The translations under genes and the position numbers were made by a program. A model generated the notes under the pieces. It was given only the letters and a program-made list of their open reading frames with translations, was not told the DNA's origin and searched no databases. 64,000 nt of DNA from the sequence record PQ227241.1. One strand, 5' to 3'. Each line of letters starts with the position of its first letter. Positions within the stretch are counted from its first letter, which is position 1. Shown here piece after piece: positions 4,580 through 63,164 of the stretch.

Positions 4580-4599
4580 ACCAGCCCCGAAGGGCTGGT
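4580..4599 (-). terminator. UUCG-loop hairpin terminator
   Basis: accagccc-cgaa-gggctggt; U-rich tail on the minus strand. Confidence 0.75.
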
Positions 4600-14899: not shown

Positions 14900-15502
14900 T
14901 CATTGTGTATAATAATTCTTTTTGAGATTATCCATATCGTAAGAATCATGTTTGAACTCAAACTTCTTAGCTATCTCACTCGAAAAAGCTTGTTTACGTT
15001 TTTCTTCTTGTTCACGGATATCGTAAGGACCATTCTCTTTAACAAGATATTTTTTATACGGCCCAGTTCCTTGGATATATCCATCAGGAATAATGGTTGT
15101 GAGATATTTAGCCTCTACCAACCGGATGCACCGTCCATAACCAACTTCATTGGCATGACGAACTTGGATTAGTTGTCTATTCTTGGCAATACGTTCAGAT
15201 ATGCATGGGAAGTAAACCGGATCATCTCCTTTTTTACAGTTACCCATATCAACCTTTGCGTACAGAATTTTTCTATGATTGGCTTCGAAGAAAGCCCGAG
15301 CTTCACGAATACGTTGGGACCGAATAGCTTCCTTAGTTCTGACATTCTTTAGATGTGCAGGTTGTAAAAAAGGATTCATCTTTCGCACGTGACGTTGGAT
15401 AAGTTTTGTCGTGTAATGAGGTGAATCATTAGCCATAGCCAGTAGGCTATTGTACATCTCAATCGACATGATTACTTGCTGCGGGTCATTATTGCGCTGC
15501 AT
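14900..15502 (-). CDS. Basic hypothetical protein
   Basis: ORF track; GGAG RBS. Confidence 0.8.
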   Translation of the reverse strand: MQRNNDPQQVIMSIEMYNSLLAMANDSPHYTTKLIQRHVRKMNPFLQPAHLKNVRTKEAIRSQRIREARAFFEANHRKILYAKVDMGNCKKGDDPVYFPCISERIAKNRQLIQVRHANEVGYGRCIRLVEAKYLTTIIPDGYIQGTGPYKKYLVKENGPYDIREQEEKRKQAFSSEIAKKFEFKHDSYDMDNLKKNYYTQ

Positions 15503-18419: not shown

Positions 18420-18821
18420 TCATGCTTTTGAAAGATCATATTTAATAGCTTCATCTTTCATAGGAGTTAATACAATAGTCACTTTTTCAAAACCATGTAT
18501 ATCCCTACCATTATAAGAAATATCAATACTCTCCCAATCCTGGTTAACTACTTCAGCATGAAGAATATTTTTAATATTGATAGCATCTGTTTTATCAAAC
18601 CATTTAAAAACCTTTGGGTTAAATACAAGTTCGAAAGTAGTTTGATATGGATAGCTTTTCTGTTTAACAAGCCTACTAGATGCTAGTGATGTATTCTCAA
18701 TGTTTCGAATAACATCAATCATTGCTTTACGGATAGTAAGTAATTTACTTTTCAGAACCAAATCAATAAATGCTGGATCAGTTGTCATTACTTCTTTTAC
18801 AGATGGAAATGTGATTTCCAT
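18420..18821 (-). CDS. Hypothetical early protein
   Basis: GAGG RBS; likely paralog of 18986..19381. Confidence 0.8.
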   Translation of the reverse strand: MEITFPSVKEVMTTDPAFIDLVLKSKLLTIRKAMIDVIRNIENTSLASSRLVKQKSYPYQTTFELVFNPKVFKWFDKTDAINIKNILHAEVVNQDWESIDISYNGRDIHGFEKVTIVLTPMKDEAIKYDLSKA

Positions 18822-18837
18822 AGCATCCTCTTATAGG

Positions 18838-19014
18838 TTAATTATTAAAAGATAAATCATAATCACTTTGTCTGCGATTCGGATTAACAGGATCAGGATA
18901 TTTTCCAGTTTTGATAACTTCTTTTATAGCTCTAAAATCACGTTCTAGAAAATCTAGTTTTTTAACTAACTCTTTTTCTAATTCTTTATTGAGTAGTCTT
19001 CTTAATTTGCTCAT
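18838..19014 (-). CDS. Small basic helical protein, 58 aa (below track cutoff)
   Basis: Hand translation MSKLRRLLNKELEKELVKKLDFLERDFRAIKEVIKTGKYPDPVNPNRRQSDYDLSFNN; fills the gap exactly. Confidence 0.6.
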   Translation of the reverse strand: MSKLRRLLNKELEKELVKKLDFLERDFRAIKEVIKTGKYPDPVNPNRRQSDYDLSFNN

Positions 19015-19381
19015 CTACGTATACTCTTACAATGAACCAATTGATTAGGCCAAAACCTTTTGGTGTGATGGTAATGTCATCTTTATATCCATTTTTAGTG
19101 ATTACATTACGTAATACTTTAATTGCTTCAGGTGGAATAAGATTAGCATTACCGGTAACACTATACTCGAAATAATAACCTACACCTGGTAAATAACCTG
19201 ATGCAATCTGGTTAGTACCTGTGATATTACTAACGTGTTGGAAGTCACTAAAAGCATTCTTGTAGAATAACAAAATATTAGGAATTACTTCATCCCTAAT
19301 AGTAGAACTAGTAATGGCATCCGCCGATGGAAAATAAGGTACTAATTCATCTGTTACATTGGTGCTATTAATATCGGACAT
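18986..19381 (-). CDS. Hypothetical early protein
   Basis: GAGG RBS; first gene after a TATATTAC promoter. Confidence 0.8.
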   Translation of the reverse strand: MSDINSTNVTDELVPYFPSADAITSSTIRDEVIPNILLFYKNAFSDFQHVSNITGTNQIASGYLPGVGYYFEYSVTGNANLIPPEAIKVLRNVITKNGYKDDITITPKGFGLINWFIVRVYVDEQIKKTTQ

Positions 19382-19427
19382 AATCTTTTCCTCATTATAA
19401 AAGGATAAATATCTTTATGGTAATCCT

Positions 19428-19450
19428 GTAATATAGATTTAAATTAATTT
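19428..19450 (-). promoter_or_regulatory. Early-type promoter (TATATTAC)
   Basis: aaattaatttaaatcTATATTAC on the minus strand. Confidence 0.7.
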
Positions 19451-19463
19451 ATAATGAATGGCA

Positions 19464-19490
19464 TAAAGGAGCCCCTGGTGGGCTCCTTTA
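19464..19490. terminator. Bidirectional hairpin terminator
   Basis: taaaggagccc-ctggt-gggctccttta, perfect 11-bp stem. Confidence 0.7.
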
Positions 19491-19499
19491 ATGTAATAG

Positions 19500-19662
19500 G
19501 TCCGACCCCTATCTAGAGGTCGGTGAGTAGCAAGGCACCGTAGTTGGGGTTCGTGTCGTTCCTGACGATACTTTAGTACCCCGGTTTATTTACGACTGGA
19601 TCACCCCCTTAAAGTGCAGTGCGTTTTACGCAAACTGCCTTGCTCTATATCATTGCACTGTG
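19500..19662. ncRNA. Candidate structured non-coding RNA (pseudoknot-capable)
   Basis: GC-richer non-coding island with multiple helices, two of them crossing (see findings). Confidence 0.45.
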
Positions 19663-19731
19663 CGTATTTTTATTCGTTAGCTAATCTTATGACTTAGAGT
19701 TATATTTACATACCCCTTAAGGAAAAATGCA

Positions 19732-21843
19732 ATGATAGACTCATTTAGGAAGCTAATGGGCTCGCTATCAATTACTGAAACTGATCAAGAAATTATCATC
19801 AGTGGTTTTGATGGTGCTGCATTCATTAGAGATATTAACAAGTATTGGCGAACCACTAAATTAGCTACGCAGTTATTTAACACGGTTAGTCGTCGTAGTA
19901 TTTCATTTTATAAATTCTTTGCTCCTGAAATATATTACATGCTAGAAGCAGTAAAGAATTATAGAAGTAGATACATCTCTATTAAAACTGTTAATGCCAT
20001 CCGTGAAGCAATGCTTCAATATACCTGGTTAAAAAATACTCGTCCTGTAGATACCAACTCTGTACCAGGTAGACTCAATTTCAAGATGTTAGACAAATTG
20101 ACATTTACACCAGATGAGTCTCAAAAAGCTTATTTTGAAAATTATAATTATCGAATTGACCAGTATGGTTTACGTGGTGATATTGTTGCAGGTAAACCTG
20201 GTACTGGTAAGACATTCATGACGATGGCTATTGCTGAAATGGTTGAGTCGGATATCATTATAGTTGTTTGTGAAAAGAAGTCTATTGATCTAATATGGAA
20301 GCCATCTATTATTGAGATGTATAAGGAAAGACAAAAAGTATGGTCGACCATTGATGATAAAGCCTACAACGGTCAAAGAATACTTATATCCCATTACCAG
20401 GCGCAAGATAAAATAATTGATCTATTAAGAAGCGGTATATTCAAAGGTAAGAACATTACGGTGATTCTGGATGAATCACACAATATGAACGATCCTAATT
20501 CTGCACAATCTCTTAAGTTCCAGCAAATATGTTTTATGTCTAACTCTAATAACAGATTATTAGCGTCAGGTACCCCTGTTAAAGCACTTGGTTCTGAATT
20601 AGTAAGTGCATTAAGAGTATTAGACGATCTCTTCACCAATGAGGTTGAAGAACGTTTTAAGAAAGCATTTGGAAAAGAGACACAGAAAGGATTAGATATT
20701 GTCCAACATCGCTTTGGGTTAATTGCGTACGTCATTGAAAAGAAAGATACTGAGGTTTTACCACCGAGGATAAAAGCGTATCGTATCAAGATACCAAATG
20801 GATCACAGTATACTCTTAATGCCATTAAACGTGATTGTGAAGCTTTTATTAGAGAACGTGTAAAGTTCTATGCTGCGCGCCGACCAGAAGATGAGAAGTA
20901 TTGGGCTAAACTAATGGCGATACACGAGAACTCTCTTAAGACCCAGGCGCAGAAAGATGGTTTCGCTCGCTATAAGAATTTGATTAAAATAATTCAGAAG
21001 AATCAAGACCCGCGATACATTGGTGAAGAAATTAAAGAATCTAACCAATATGAAAAAATGTTTATAGAGCCAACTTTACCTCGTAATGAAATAGCTGCTT
21101 TTAGAGATATTAAATCAGTTATAAAATACGTTATGCTAAAGATACAAGGTGAATGTTTGGGAAGGGTTTTAGGTGCTAAACGCATTCAGTGCCATGTGGA
21201 CATGGTACCGTATATTGACTGGGTTGGTATCACTGAATCAACTATGAAGAAAACGATTGCATTTACATCGTTTGTTGAGGTTGTTGATACTGTTGATAAG
21301 TACACCAATAAATTAGGTATGCATCCGGCGGTGGTGTATGGTAAAACCAATGACAATTTACCTCAAATAATCAGTAGATTTGAGAAAGACCCTAAATTAA
21401 ATCCATTGGTAGCTACATATGCTTCCCTTTCAACAGCGGTCCGTATGACGATGGCTGATACTATGGTGACAATTAATTCACCGTTTAGGCATTACATTCT
21501 AGAACAAGCTATTGCTCGAATTTACCGTAAAGGTCAGGATTCACAAACAGTCGTATATCAATGTACTCTCGATACAGAAGATGAACCGAATATCTCAACA
21601 AGGTCAGATGACATTCTAAAATGGAGTCAGGCAATGGTTGAAGCTATTATGGGTATTAAATCTCCATTTGAGATCACAGAGTCATTAGAAAGTTATGTTG
21701 ATAAAAATAATAATTTTGATGAAAATAAAATCATTTATCAGATGCTAAAAGAATCATTTGAGAAGTATGACATCGCAATTGATTTTAATGACTTTGATAC
21801 ACGTATGTATAAACCATATCAGCCCGCATATATGCGGTTTTAA
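19732..21843 (+). CDS. SF2 (SNF2/DExD-like) helicase, phiKZ-type virion-associated
   Basis: GKPGTGKT, ILDESH, ASGTP, EQAIARIYRKGQ motifs. Confidence 0.9.
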   Translation: MIDSFRKLMGSLSITETDQEIIISGFDGAAFIRDINKYWRTTKLATQLFNTVSRRSISFYKFFAPEIYYMLEAVKNYRSRYISIKTVNAIREAMLQYTWLKNTRPVDTNSVPGRLNFKMLDKLTFTPDESQKAYFENYNYRIDQYGLRGDIVAGKPGTGKTFMTMAIAEMVESDIIIVVCEKKSIDLIWKPSIIEMYKERQKVWSTIDDKAYNGQRILISHYQAQDKIIDLLRSGIFKGKNITVILDESHNMNDPNSAQSLKFQQICFMSNSNNRLLASGTPVKALGSELVSALRVLDDLFTNEVEERFKKAFGKETQKGLDIVQHRFGLIAYVIEKKDTEVLPPRIKAYRIKIPNGSQYTLNAIKRDCEAFIRERVKFYAARRPEDEKYWAKLMAIHENSLKTQAQKDGFARYKNLIKIIQKNQDPRYIGEEIKESNQYEKMFIEPTLPRNEIAAFRDIKSVIKYVMLKIQGECLGRVLGAKRIQCHVDMVPYIDWVGITESTMKKTIAFTSFVEVVDTVDKYTNKLGMHPAVVYGKTNDNLPQIISRFEKDPKLNPLVATYASLSTAVRMTMADTMVTINSPFRHYILEQAIARIYRKGQDSQTVVYQCTLDTEDEPNISTRSDDILKWSQAMVEAIMGIKSPFEITESLESYVDKNNNFDENKIIYQMLKESFEKYDIAIDFNDFDTRMYKPYQPAYMRF

Positions 21844-24288: not shown

Positions 24289-24320
24289 CATAAGCCCTCC
24301 CGCAATGGGAGGGCATTATG
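24289..24320. repeat. 32-bp palindrome at convergent junction (copy 1 of 5)
   Basis: cataagccctcccgcaatgggagggcattatg. Confidence 0.85.
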
Positions 24321-52662: not shown

Positions 52663-52694
52663 CATAATGCCCTCCCGTAATGGGAGGGCTTATG
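52663..52694. repeat. 32-bp palindrome at convergent junction (copy 2 of 5)
   Basis: cataatgccctcccgtaatgggagggcttatg. Confidence 0.85.
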
Positions 52695-63132: not shown

Positions 63133-63164
63133 CATAATGCCCTCCCACTATGGGAGGGCTTATG
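63133..63164. repeat. 32-bp palindrome at convergent junction (copy 5 of 5)
   Basis: cataatgccctcccactatgggagggcttatg. Confidence 0.85.

Follow-up and report, generated by a model that had tools for sequence, protein, structure and literature searches.

Jumbo phages of the phiKZ type build a nucleus-like shell and use polymerases of their own, and they depend fully on the ribosomes of the host. Steering of host ribosomes by these phages has so far been tied only to proteins such as gp14. Here we describe a structured noncoding RNA element located between two genes in a 64,000-nucleotide (nt) stretch of sequence record PQ227241.1 (hereafter, the window, from whose first letter positions are counted), whose most conserved segment is complementary to the 3' end of 16S ribosomal RNA (rRNA). 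Among the closest described systems are other RNAs of jumbo phages. Noncoding RNA candidates derived from 5' untranslated regions (UTRs) were reported for phiKZ (Putzeys et al. 2024, PMC10914365), and a study of 201phi2-1 reported a conserved small RNA (sRNA) upstream of the gp182/gp277 tail gene (PMC11512511). Like the present element, these RNAs are phage-encoded, short, terminator-bounded and conserved across jumbo-phage genera. The loci given in the main texts of those studies (PHIKZ221, PHIKZ302, PHIKZ298, p40 and gp182/gp277) are leaders or trailers of genes, whereas the element appears to be a separate unit with a recognizable target sequence. A literature search turned up no description of a phage RNA with complementarity to the 16S 3' end, and no paper naming this RNA. 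The phiKZ Grad-seq study sought noncoding RNAs by their absence from ribosomal fractions, at 10 min post infection only (PMC8545117); an RNA that travels with the 30S subunit, or that appears later, would have escaped such a screen.

Functionally, the nearest known systems are those that act on the same target. One is the ordinary Shine-Dalgarno site: AGGRGGUGAUCC, found in the element, is a "perfect" Shine-Dalgarno sequence, and the block around it is complementary to the 16S 3' tail. Unlike such a site, the element has no start codon or open reading frame (ORF), its complementarity of 14-21 nt enters helix 45, and the block lies in the junction of a structured RNA with its own promoter-like motif and terminator. 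Initiation is blocked by ribosome modulation factor and related hibernation proteins, which cover or mask the anti-Shine-Dalgarno region of 16S rRNA. These are host proteins and the element a phage RNA; the analogy is one of target only. Synthetic antisense oligomers directed against the 16S 3' end, such as the oligonucleotides of the 1980s, inhibit initiation. Peptide nucleic acid antisense tools have been applied to phiKZ (PMC12571901). Such oligomers are man-made, whereas the element would be a natural, conserved phage gene supplying the antisense sequence. 6S RNA is an abundant structured RNA that imitates promoter DNA and sequesters RNA polymerase; it differs from the element in target and fold, with no sequence relationship and no Rfam match. 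A conserved phage RNA with a 14-21-nt match to the mRNA-recognition tail offers a concrete handle on ribosome steering. Binding to the ribosome, if it occurs, would make it a new viral means of influencing translation and the natural analogue of synthetic oligomers aimed at ribosomes. Otherwise it still stands as a new and well-supported RNA family of jumbo phages with a clear structure, meriting a place in RNA databases and in the phiKZ annotation.

A conserved, covarying noncoding RNA family

The element is a structured noncoding phage RNA and is best described as a new sRNA family of jumbo phages, a conclusion well supported by conservation and covariation. Fourteen distinct phiKZ-like Pseudomonas jumbo phages or contigs carry it: noncoding homologues were found in phiKZ, SL2, phiPA3, PA1C (identical in sequence to HHBS36_1), 201phi2-1, Viktualia, Phabio, Psa21 and Noxifer, together with the IMG/VR or metagenome contigs L013, L021, L442, L450 and L455. 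This set was built by sensitive DNA search, pattern scans of IMG/VR and metagenomes, and a covariance model (R1). A DNA search with the gap alone matched 19531-19727 at about 70% identity in PA1C-like phages, and the element core was 81-85% identical in phiPA3 and 201phi2-1; all matches lay in noncoding DNA, and the homologous gaps share one common layout. Among these phages the neighboring helicase proteins are only 51-58% identical to that of phiKZ, and the conserved noncoding piece is therefore under strong selection. The homologous RNAs are predicted to be 149-183 nt long. Each genome searched holds one copy, and neither the window nor the nearest whole genome yielded a second copy or a further target.

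Covariation was computed on a model-guided alignment of the 14 sequences, with 24 pairs and 500 shuffles. Standard pairs filled 89.5% of cells, as compared with 77.7% after shuffling, and 16 of the 24 pairs showed changes on both sides; none of the 500 shuffles reached the observed values. When partners were slid by 1-3 columns as a control, pairing fell to 28-42%. In the closing helix P1 (see Table 1 for all features), three pairs show compensatory changes among the 14 sequences. Hairpin H3 is paired in 92.5% of cells with covarying inner pairs, and its loop reads GUAA in phiPA3 and GACA in Noxifer. The larger H2 domain has compensatory changes at all 11 modelled pairs (98% and 85% of cells paired). 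Two hairpins lie outside the covariance model: H1, whose compensatory changes were judged by eye, and the terminator hairpin, whose stem sequences change between phages with pairing kept. Folding of 19462-19645 was better than that of dinucleotide shuffles on both strands (z -4.95 for the minus strand, -4.37 for the plus strand), with a minimum free energy (MFE) of -71.1 kcal/mol for the minus-strand RNA.

The original prediction, made from the letters alone, had proposed a structured phage RNA here, and the conservation and covariation in the 14 members, with a fold of 19462-19645 that beats shuffles, bear it out. Three of its helices hold in the homologues, namely ccgacc/ggtcgg (H1), the long-range agcaagg/ccttgct (P1) and ggggt/acccc with its inner hairpin (H2). 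The pairing gcagt/actgc is likewise real, as the covarying H3, but the switching role assigned to it found no support from homologues, and neither did the competing "switching" helices in general nor the helix ccggtt/gactgg. The pseudoknot of that prediction, between 19613-19621 and 19651-19659, is not conserved: it is perfect in phiKZ and SL2 only, with 4-6 of the nine pairs in other phages, and its 3' arm falls upstream of the predicted RNA start.

The loop of H1 carries a motif of its own, CUAWUCUA (as CUAUUCUA, CUAAUCUA or CUAUCUAA), in 201phi2-1, Viktualia, Phabio, PA1C, L021, L450 and L455, on stems that differ. This motif may be a second recognition site.

Coding potential and known RNA classes

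The element lies in a 350-bp gap (19382-19731) between PHIKZ204 and the helicase gene PHIKZ203. As had been predicted, the island is richer in GC than its surroundings (46-53% over 19450-19650, against 24-38% in the flanks) and is free of ORFs: the gap contains none of at least 30 amino acids (aa), and a comparison of 11 homologues revealed no conserved ORF on either strand, whatever the frame. No start codon was found 4-12 nt downstream of the 16S-complementary block that would open a conserved ORF in these 11 homologues. A small ORF was accordingly ruled out. In Viktualia, a hypothetical coding sequence (CDS) of 29 aa is annotated inside the sRNA homologue (L036:1460-1549, minus strand). Since this ORF is absent from the other phages, the annotation is probably spurious.

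Scanning of the window with 4227 Rfam models at gathering thresholds gave no match, in agreement with the lack of a known family noted at the outset. A permissive scan of 19300-19800 returned chance-level matches only (E 1-10, 15-18 bits against thresholds of 49-72), and ARAGORN found no tRNA or tmRNA in the window. Nothing points to a ribozyme or a replication element, both of which had been suggested. The suggestion of a sponge RNA came closest in spirit, but a sponge of the Rsm/Csr type was ruled out: the H2 tip reads AGGA or GGGA in some members but in most it is GAGA, GUGA or GCGA, and GGA loops are neither repeated nor conserved. With regard to Hfq-dependent trans-acting sRNAs, the analysis noted a terminator hairpin that carries a short U-rich tail.

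Probable transcribed strand and transcription signals

Watson-Crick covariation is blind to strand. The RNA is most likely transcribed from the minus strand, from 19645 to about 19462 (about 212854-213037 on the plus strand of NC_004629), because of its terminator, the terminator loops, the tip of H2, the promoter-like motif and the fact that the module moves as a unit. The published phiKZ terminator consists of a hairpin followed by YTTATKYYGT (PMC10914365). At this locus the signature TTAT(G/T)YY follows the GC-rich hairpin 19487-19467 on the minus strand only, with none on the plus strand, so that the terminator at 19464-19490, originally taken to be bidirectional, has one direction. The same signature stands 2-21 nt past the stop codons of same-strand ORFs at 10 sites in the window, and the copy at 19487-19467 is the sole minus-strand instance there without a same-strand ORF upstream. 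In all 14 homologues a terminator adjoins the element in the same orientation, as a hairpin and then (T)TTATG-YY(G)T. Read on the minus strand, the terminator loops are UUCG or UACG in eight homologues, and 11 of 14 members have a GNRA tetraloop at the tip of H2, with every N represented (GGGA, GAGA, GUGA or GCGA); phiKZ and SL2 (CAGGA) and Phabio (GGGAA) are the exceptions. On the other strand the tip would read UCNC, which is no known motif.

At the other end, a promoter-like motif ends 2-5 nt before P1 in 13 of the 14 members, Noxifer having TATTGTATG in its place, and the G at 19645 is the inferred start of the RNA. The motif agrees with the published phiKZ middle promoter, described as a TACT centered 22 nt upstream of the start with an A-rich repeat before it (PMC8244752).

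The pairs of G with U were less telling. On the model alignment, G-U and A-C cells stood at 15:13, which is uninformative owing to local misalignments and alternative registers, and in H1 the G-U pairs fit the minus strand only (5:0); the preference for the plus strand that had been noted earlier is thus not upheld. Comparison of the two strands by MFE gave a mixed outcome. Among public RNA runs (24, of which 13 are on record as RNA), contigs from the RNA libraries of several studies include the region; used as contigs, they show presence in the libraries and carry neither strand, ends nor expression level.

The element is most likely a unit of its own and not the leader of the helicase gene, as its own promoter-like motif and its own terminator argue. 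In phiKZ and PA1C, the strand defined by the terminator is opposite to the helicase gene. In phiPA3 the module is inverted as one unit relative to the helicase, so that a single strand carries gp232, the element, the terminator and the helicase in this order; this is the only phage in which the element lies upstream on the helicase strand, but the terminator and a separate TTATG motif intervene. In 201phi2-1, Phabio and Viktualia, the element lies between small genes, which separate it from the helicase gene, and the upstream gene ends in a terminator of its own ahead of the promoter-like motif. The helicase gene has a conserved TTATG motif of its own, which lies nearer its start codon than the element does.

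Other signals were seen around the gap and elsewhere in the window. The sequence AATCTTATGACTT at 19683-19695 on the plus strand, some 40 nt ahead of the start codon of the helicase gene, recurs before the helicase in phiPA3, L013 and Psa21, and looks like a TATG-type late promoter of the helicase gene placed back-to-back with the promoter-like motif of the sRNA. An AT-rich early-promoter core, CTATATTAC, lies at 19428-19436 on the minus strand, between the sRNA terminator, which it follows closely, and PHIKZ204; Phabio, L013, Psa21 and L442 likewise have the terminator followed by CTATATTAC. Four hairpins between convergent genes (4580-4599, 24294-24314, 52669-52689 and 63139-63159) carry the TTAT signature on both strands and are truly bidirectional phiKZ-type terminators, unlike the one-directional 19467-19487.

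Complementarity to the 16S rRNA 3' end

AGG(G/A)GGUGAUCCA is the longest block that is invariant in the family, with the core AGGRGGUGAUCCA at 19597-19609 on the minus strand. Together with its flanks, it can pair without interruption over 14-21 nt with the 3' terminus of Pseudomonas 16S rRNA, the anti-Shine-Dalgarno tail. The original prediction had not included this complementarity. The duplex with the last 20 nt of Pseudomonas 16S rRNA is predicted at -36.9 kcal/mol (z about -9) and ranks first of 42,650 sliding windows taken from both strands of the 64 kb, where the next best is -25.5 and the mean is -7.6 (standard deviation 3.1). The 11 homologues that were scored have 14-21 consecutive pairs and duplex energies of -26.6 to -38.2 kcal/mol, and three metagenome members also carry the block. 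No other target-like sequence was found in the window, and in the near-identical genome G001 the block occurs once. Pairing spans the free anti-Shine-Dalgarno tail (nt 1530-1542) and usually extends as far as nt 1525, within the 3' strand of helix 45. In or beside the block, the only changes are A/G facing U1537 and U1541 and C/U facing G1526, and in each case pairing is kept, as a standard or a G-U pair. No conserved helix sequesters the block. The 16S 3' end used here was verified by an exact 51-nt match in many genomes of Pseudomonas and other gammaproteobacteria, and its last 22 nt are exact in 73 of 101 genomes of the genus of the P. putida group.

When bacterial loci were searched with a profile of the phage RNAs, the matches were to the antisense strand of 16S 3' ends (E as low as 6e-5) and reached only the antisense of roughly the last 25-50 nt. 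The antisense of 16S nt ~1493-1515 is matched in order by the 3' half of the RNA (CUACGG-n-GCCUUG, with ACGACU next in some members); over 11 members, this collinearity had p values of 0.0005-0.016 in five and was weaker in six. It suggests that the RNA descended from a captured piece of host ribosomal DNA (rDNA), in which the tip of helix 45 would have been replaced by H2. The Rfam model of small-subunit rRNA, RF00177, gave no match in the window or the nearest genome.

Another stretch of the window, AAAAAGGAGATGATCCGG at about 15213-15238 on the minus strand, is the third-best complement of the 16S tail (-23.9 kcal/mol) and may be an unusually long ordinary Shine-Dalgarno sequence.

Proposed mode of action and rival explanations

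Docking on the ribosome is the most likely mechanism that the sequence comparisons suggest. As a whole, the proposal of a free-standing minus-strand sRNA gene of about 184 nt, which acts in trans and docks on the 30S subunit via the 16S 3' end, is one to which we give about an even chance of being right. A promoter of the type used by a phage RNA polymerase would start the RNA, which would head away from the helicase and end at the phiKZ-type terminator. The predicted fold is a junction closed by P1 that carries H3 and the larger, usually GNRA-tipped arm H2, followed by H1 and the terminator hairpin. Displayed between H3 and H2, the block would base-pair in trans with the 16S 3' end, and the RNA would dock on the 30S subunit like an over-long Shine-Dalgarno sequence without a start codon, so that the mRNA-recognition site would be occupied or sequestered. 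Competition with mRNAs for the anti-Shine-Dalgarno tail could then shift the choice of what is translated in middle or late infection. The extended pairing, if used, might in addition disturb helix 45 and late 30S maturation.

Several observations weigh against this proposal. The predicted probability that the block is unpaired is only 0.39-0.58, and in phiKZ its run of G is able to pair with ACCCC of H2. The tail of P. aeruginosa 16S rRNA was taken to be identical to the verified one, which is our assumption. The mRNAs of the phage themselves use Shine-Dalgarno sequences, so that a blocker of the tail would hit them too. The boundaries of the RNA-library contigs, 19506-19657 and 18800-19604, match the predicted RNA ends poorly. 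The main texts of the phiKZ Grad-seq and ONT-cappable-seq papers do not mention this RNA, which their supplementary tables may list without interpretation. Finally, the family has a narrow range: members turned up only in related contigs and in Pseudomonas phages belonging to the lineages of phiKZ, phiPA3, 201phi2-1, Phabio, Psa21 and Noxifer.

That the minus-strand sRNA is real while its block does not act on ribosomes is, in our judgment, unlikely. The block would then be a relic of rDNA, a protein-binding or tertiary core, or the site for some other RNA partner, and the function would lie elsewhere, for example in regulation of a neighboring gene, as a protein sponge or in counter-defense. 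The collinearity of the 3' half with 16S nt 1493-1515 in the same order, which points to rDNA descent, the conserved H1 loop motif that is unrelated to 16S, and the moderate accessibility of the block in predicted folds are all consistent with this possibility, as is a link to the ribosome that is drawn from sequence. A relic should decay, however, and the block is the most conserved part while the helicases have diverged to 51-58% identity; moreover, its few variable positions are precisely those that preserve pairing with 16S, and the window holds no other target-like sequence. In a bolder version of ribosome docking, the RNA would be a domesticated antisense copy of the 16S 3' end that pairs with both flanks of helix 45 (~1493-1515 and 1525-1542), with the GNRA arm standing in for its tip, and that captures or disables the 30S subunit or blocks its late maturation. 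We regard this version as unlikely. If true, it would be the first natural antisense RNA against rRNA in a bacterial system, and nucleus-forming phages would reprogram translation in that way.

It is quite unlikely that the plus strand is the functional one, either as part of a long helicase mRNA leader or by imitating the 3' minor domain of 16S rRNA (AGUC..CAAGG..CCGUAG, then an enlarged helix 45 and GGAUCACCYCCUUA) and so serving as a decoy for something that recognizes or cuts the 16S 3' end. The plus strand does read like the 16S 3' end, its fold also beats shuffles, one G-U pair of the phiKZ inner H2 stem and one of P1 in contig L021 fit this strand only and so also count against the minus strand, and the contig 19506-19657 runs on towards the helicase and leaves the terminator uncovered. 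Read in this direction, however, the flanking hairpin would be a reversed terminator at the 5' end, and the hairpin loops would be UCNC and CGAA, neither of them a known stable motif; such an RNA would, in phiPA3, 201phi2-1, Phabio and Viktualia, point away from its neighbors or run antisense to them. As a mimic it would have C in place of 16S U1537 in 11 of 14 members, and there is, downstream of the element, a conserved TTATG motif that belongs to the helicase gene. Less probable still, and in our view hardly to be expected, is a cis element, such as an insulator or attenuator between divergent units or a replication or packaging site at the DNA level. Its position between divergent or tandem units with a terminator at the end would suit such a role, and in phiPA3 it could be the 3' UTR of gp232, but a covarying core of several helices, GNRA tips and an invariant single-stranded block exceed what a terminator needs, the separate upstream-gene terminators of 201phi2-1, Phabio and Viktualia precede the promoter-like motif of the element, and repeats typical of origins were not seen in the sequence. 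We give almost no credence to the idea that the block is a very strong ordinary ribosome-binding site of a tiny unannotated ORF. The CDS annotated over the element in Viktualia would fit, and such long Shine-Dalgarno sequences were common in other phages among the matches listed, but neither a suitably placed start codon nor a conserved ORF was found in the 11 homologues.

Locus and distribution

The window at 18900-20300 is 100% identical to the minus strand of NC_004629 at 212199-213599, and its source is thus phiKZ or a near-identical isolate; a window coordinate x corresponds to phiKZ coordinate 232499 - x. The features of the locus are collected in Table 1.

Table 1. Features at and around the RNA element, in window coordinates
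Feature	Position	Strand	Remark
Predicted small RNA, ~184 nt	19645 to ~19462	minus	ends set by promoter-like motif and terminator
Promoter-like motif: A-rich run, TAC (19666-19664), 10-12 nt, ATGATATAG ending at 19645	19646-19675	minus	
P1 closing helix, 5' strand AGCAAGG	19638-19644 with 19529-19535	minus	covariation
H3 hairpin, GCAG..CUGC and inner stem	19616-19637	minus	covariation
16S-complementary block CUUUAAGGGGGUGAUCCAG ("super Shine-Dalgarno")	19596-19614	minus	between H3 and H2
H2 domain, outer stem GGGGU/ACCCC and inner hairpin	19546-19582	minus	covariation
Junction AACUACGGUG and P1 3' strand CCUUGCU	19529-19545	minus	conserved segment
H1 hairpin	19502-19523	minus	in 12 of 14 members, stem sequences differ
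phiKZ-type intrinsic terminator: GC-rich hairpin 19487-19467, then TTTATGCCAT	19458-19490	minus	
PHIKZ204	18986-19381	minus	gap neighbor
PHIKZ203, SNF2/DEAD helicase gene	19732-21843	plus	gap neighbor

Model R1 gave no match in chimalliviruses of Xanthomonas, Ralstonia, Erwinia, Klebsiella, Serratia, Escherichia coli, Vibrio and Aeromonas, nor in Pseudomonas phage EL, and in phage OBP it gave chance-level matches only, inside coding-like sequence. Two looser pattern scans of IMG/VR yielded no new members among the matches listed, which were unrelated sites; those of the second were ordinary long Shine-Dalgarno sequences. Pattern scans for the block in the genomes searched with R1 returned matches in coding sequence, save for one intergenic site in the E. 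coli phage Goslar. This site (NC_048170, 87200-87412, minus strand; L434:801-1013), between gp077 and gp076, contains AGGAGGUGAUCC with no start codon after it. The stretch folds strongly (z -4.7) and has a phiKZ-type terminator consisting of a hairpin and CTTTATGCCGT; in the predicted fold, however, its Shine-Dalgarno-like part pairs with a CUCC close by, and it has no relatives in the collection. It may be an analogue of the sRNA of the Pseudomonas phages.

The neighboring helicase gene also varies among the phages. In SL2, phiPA3, PA1C and PS119XW (L037, L002 and L003), the homologue of PHIKZ203 matches in two pieces and is annotated as a "DarB-like" protein of about 1000 aa or, in PA1C, as two overlapping CDSs. 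These helicase genes therefore contain an insertion or extra domain (an intron, an intein or a fusion) that phiKZ does not have.

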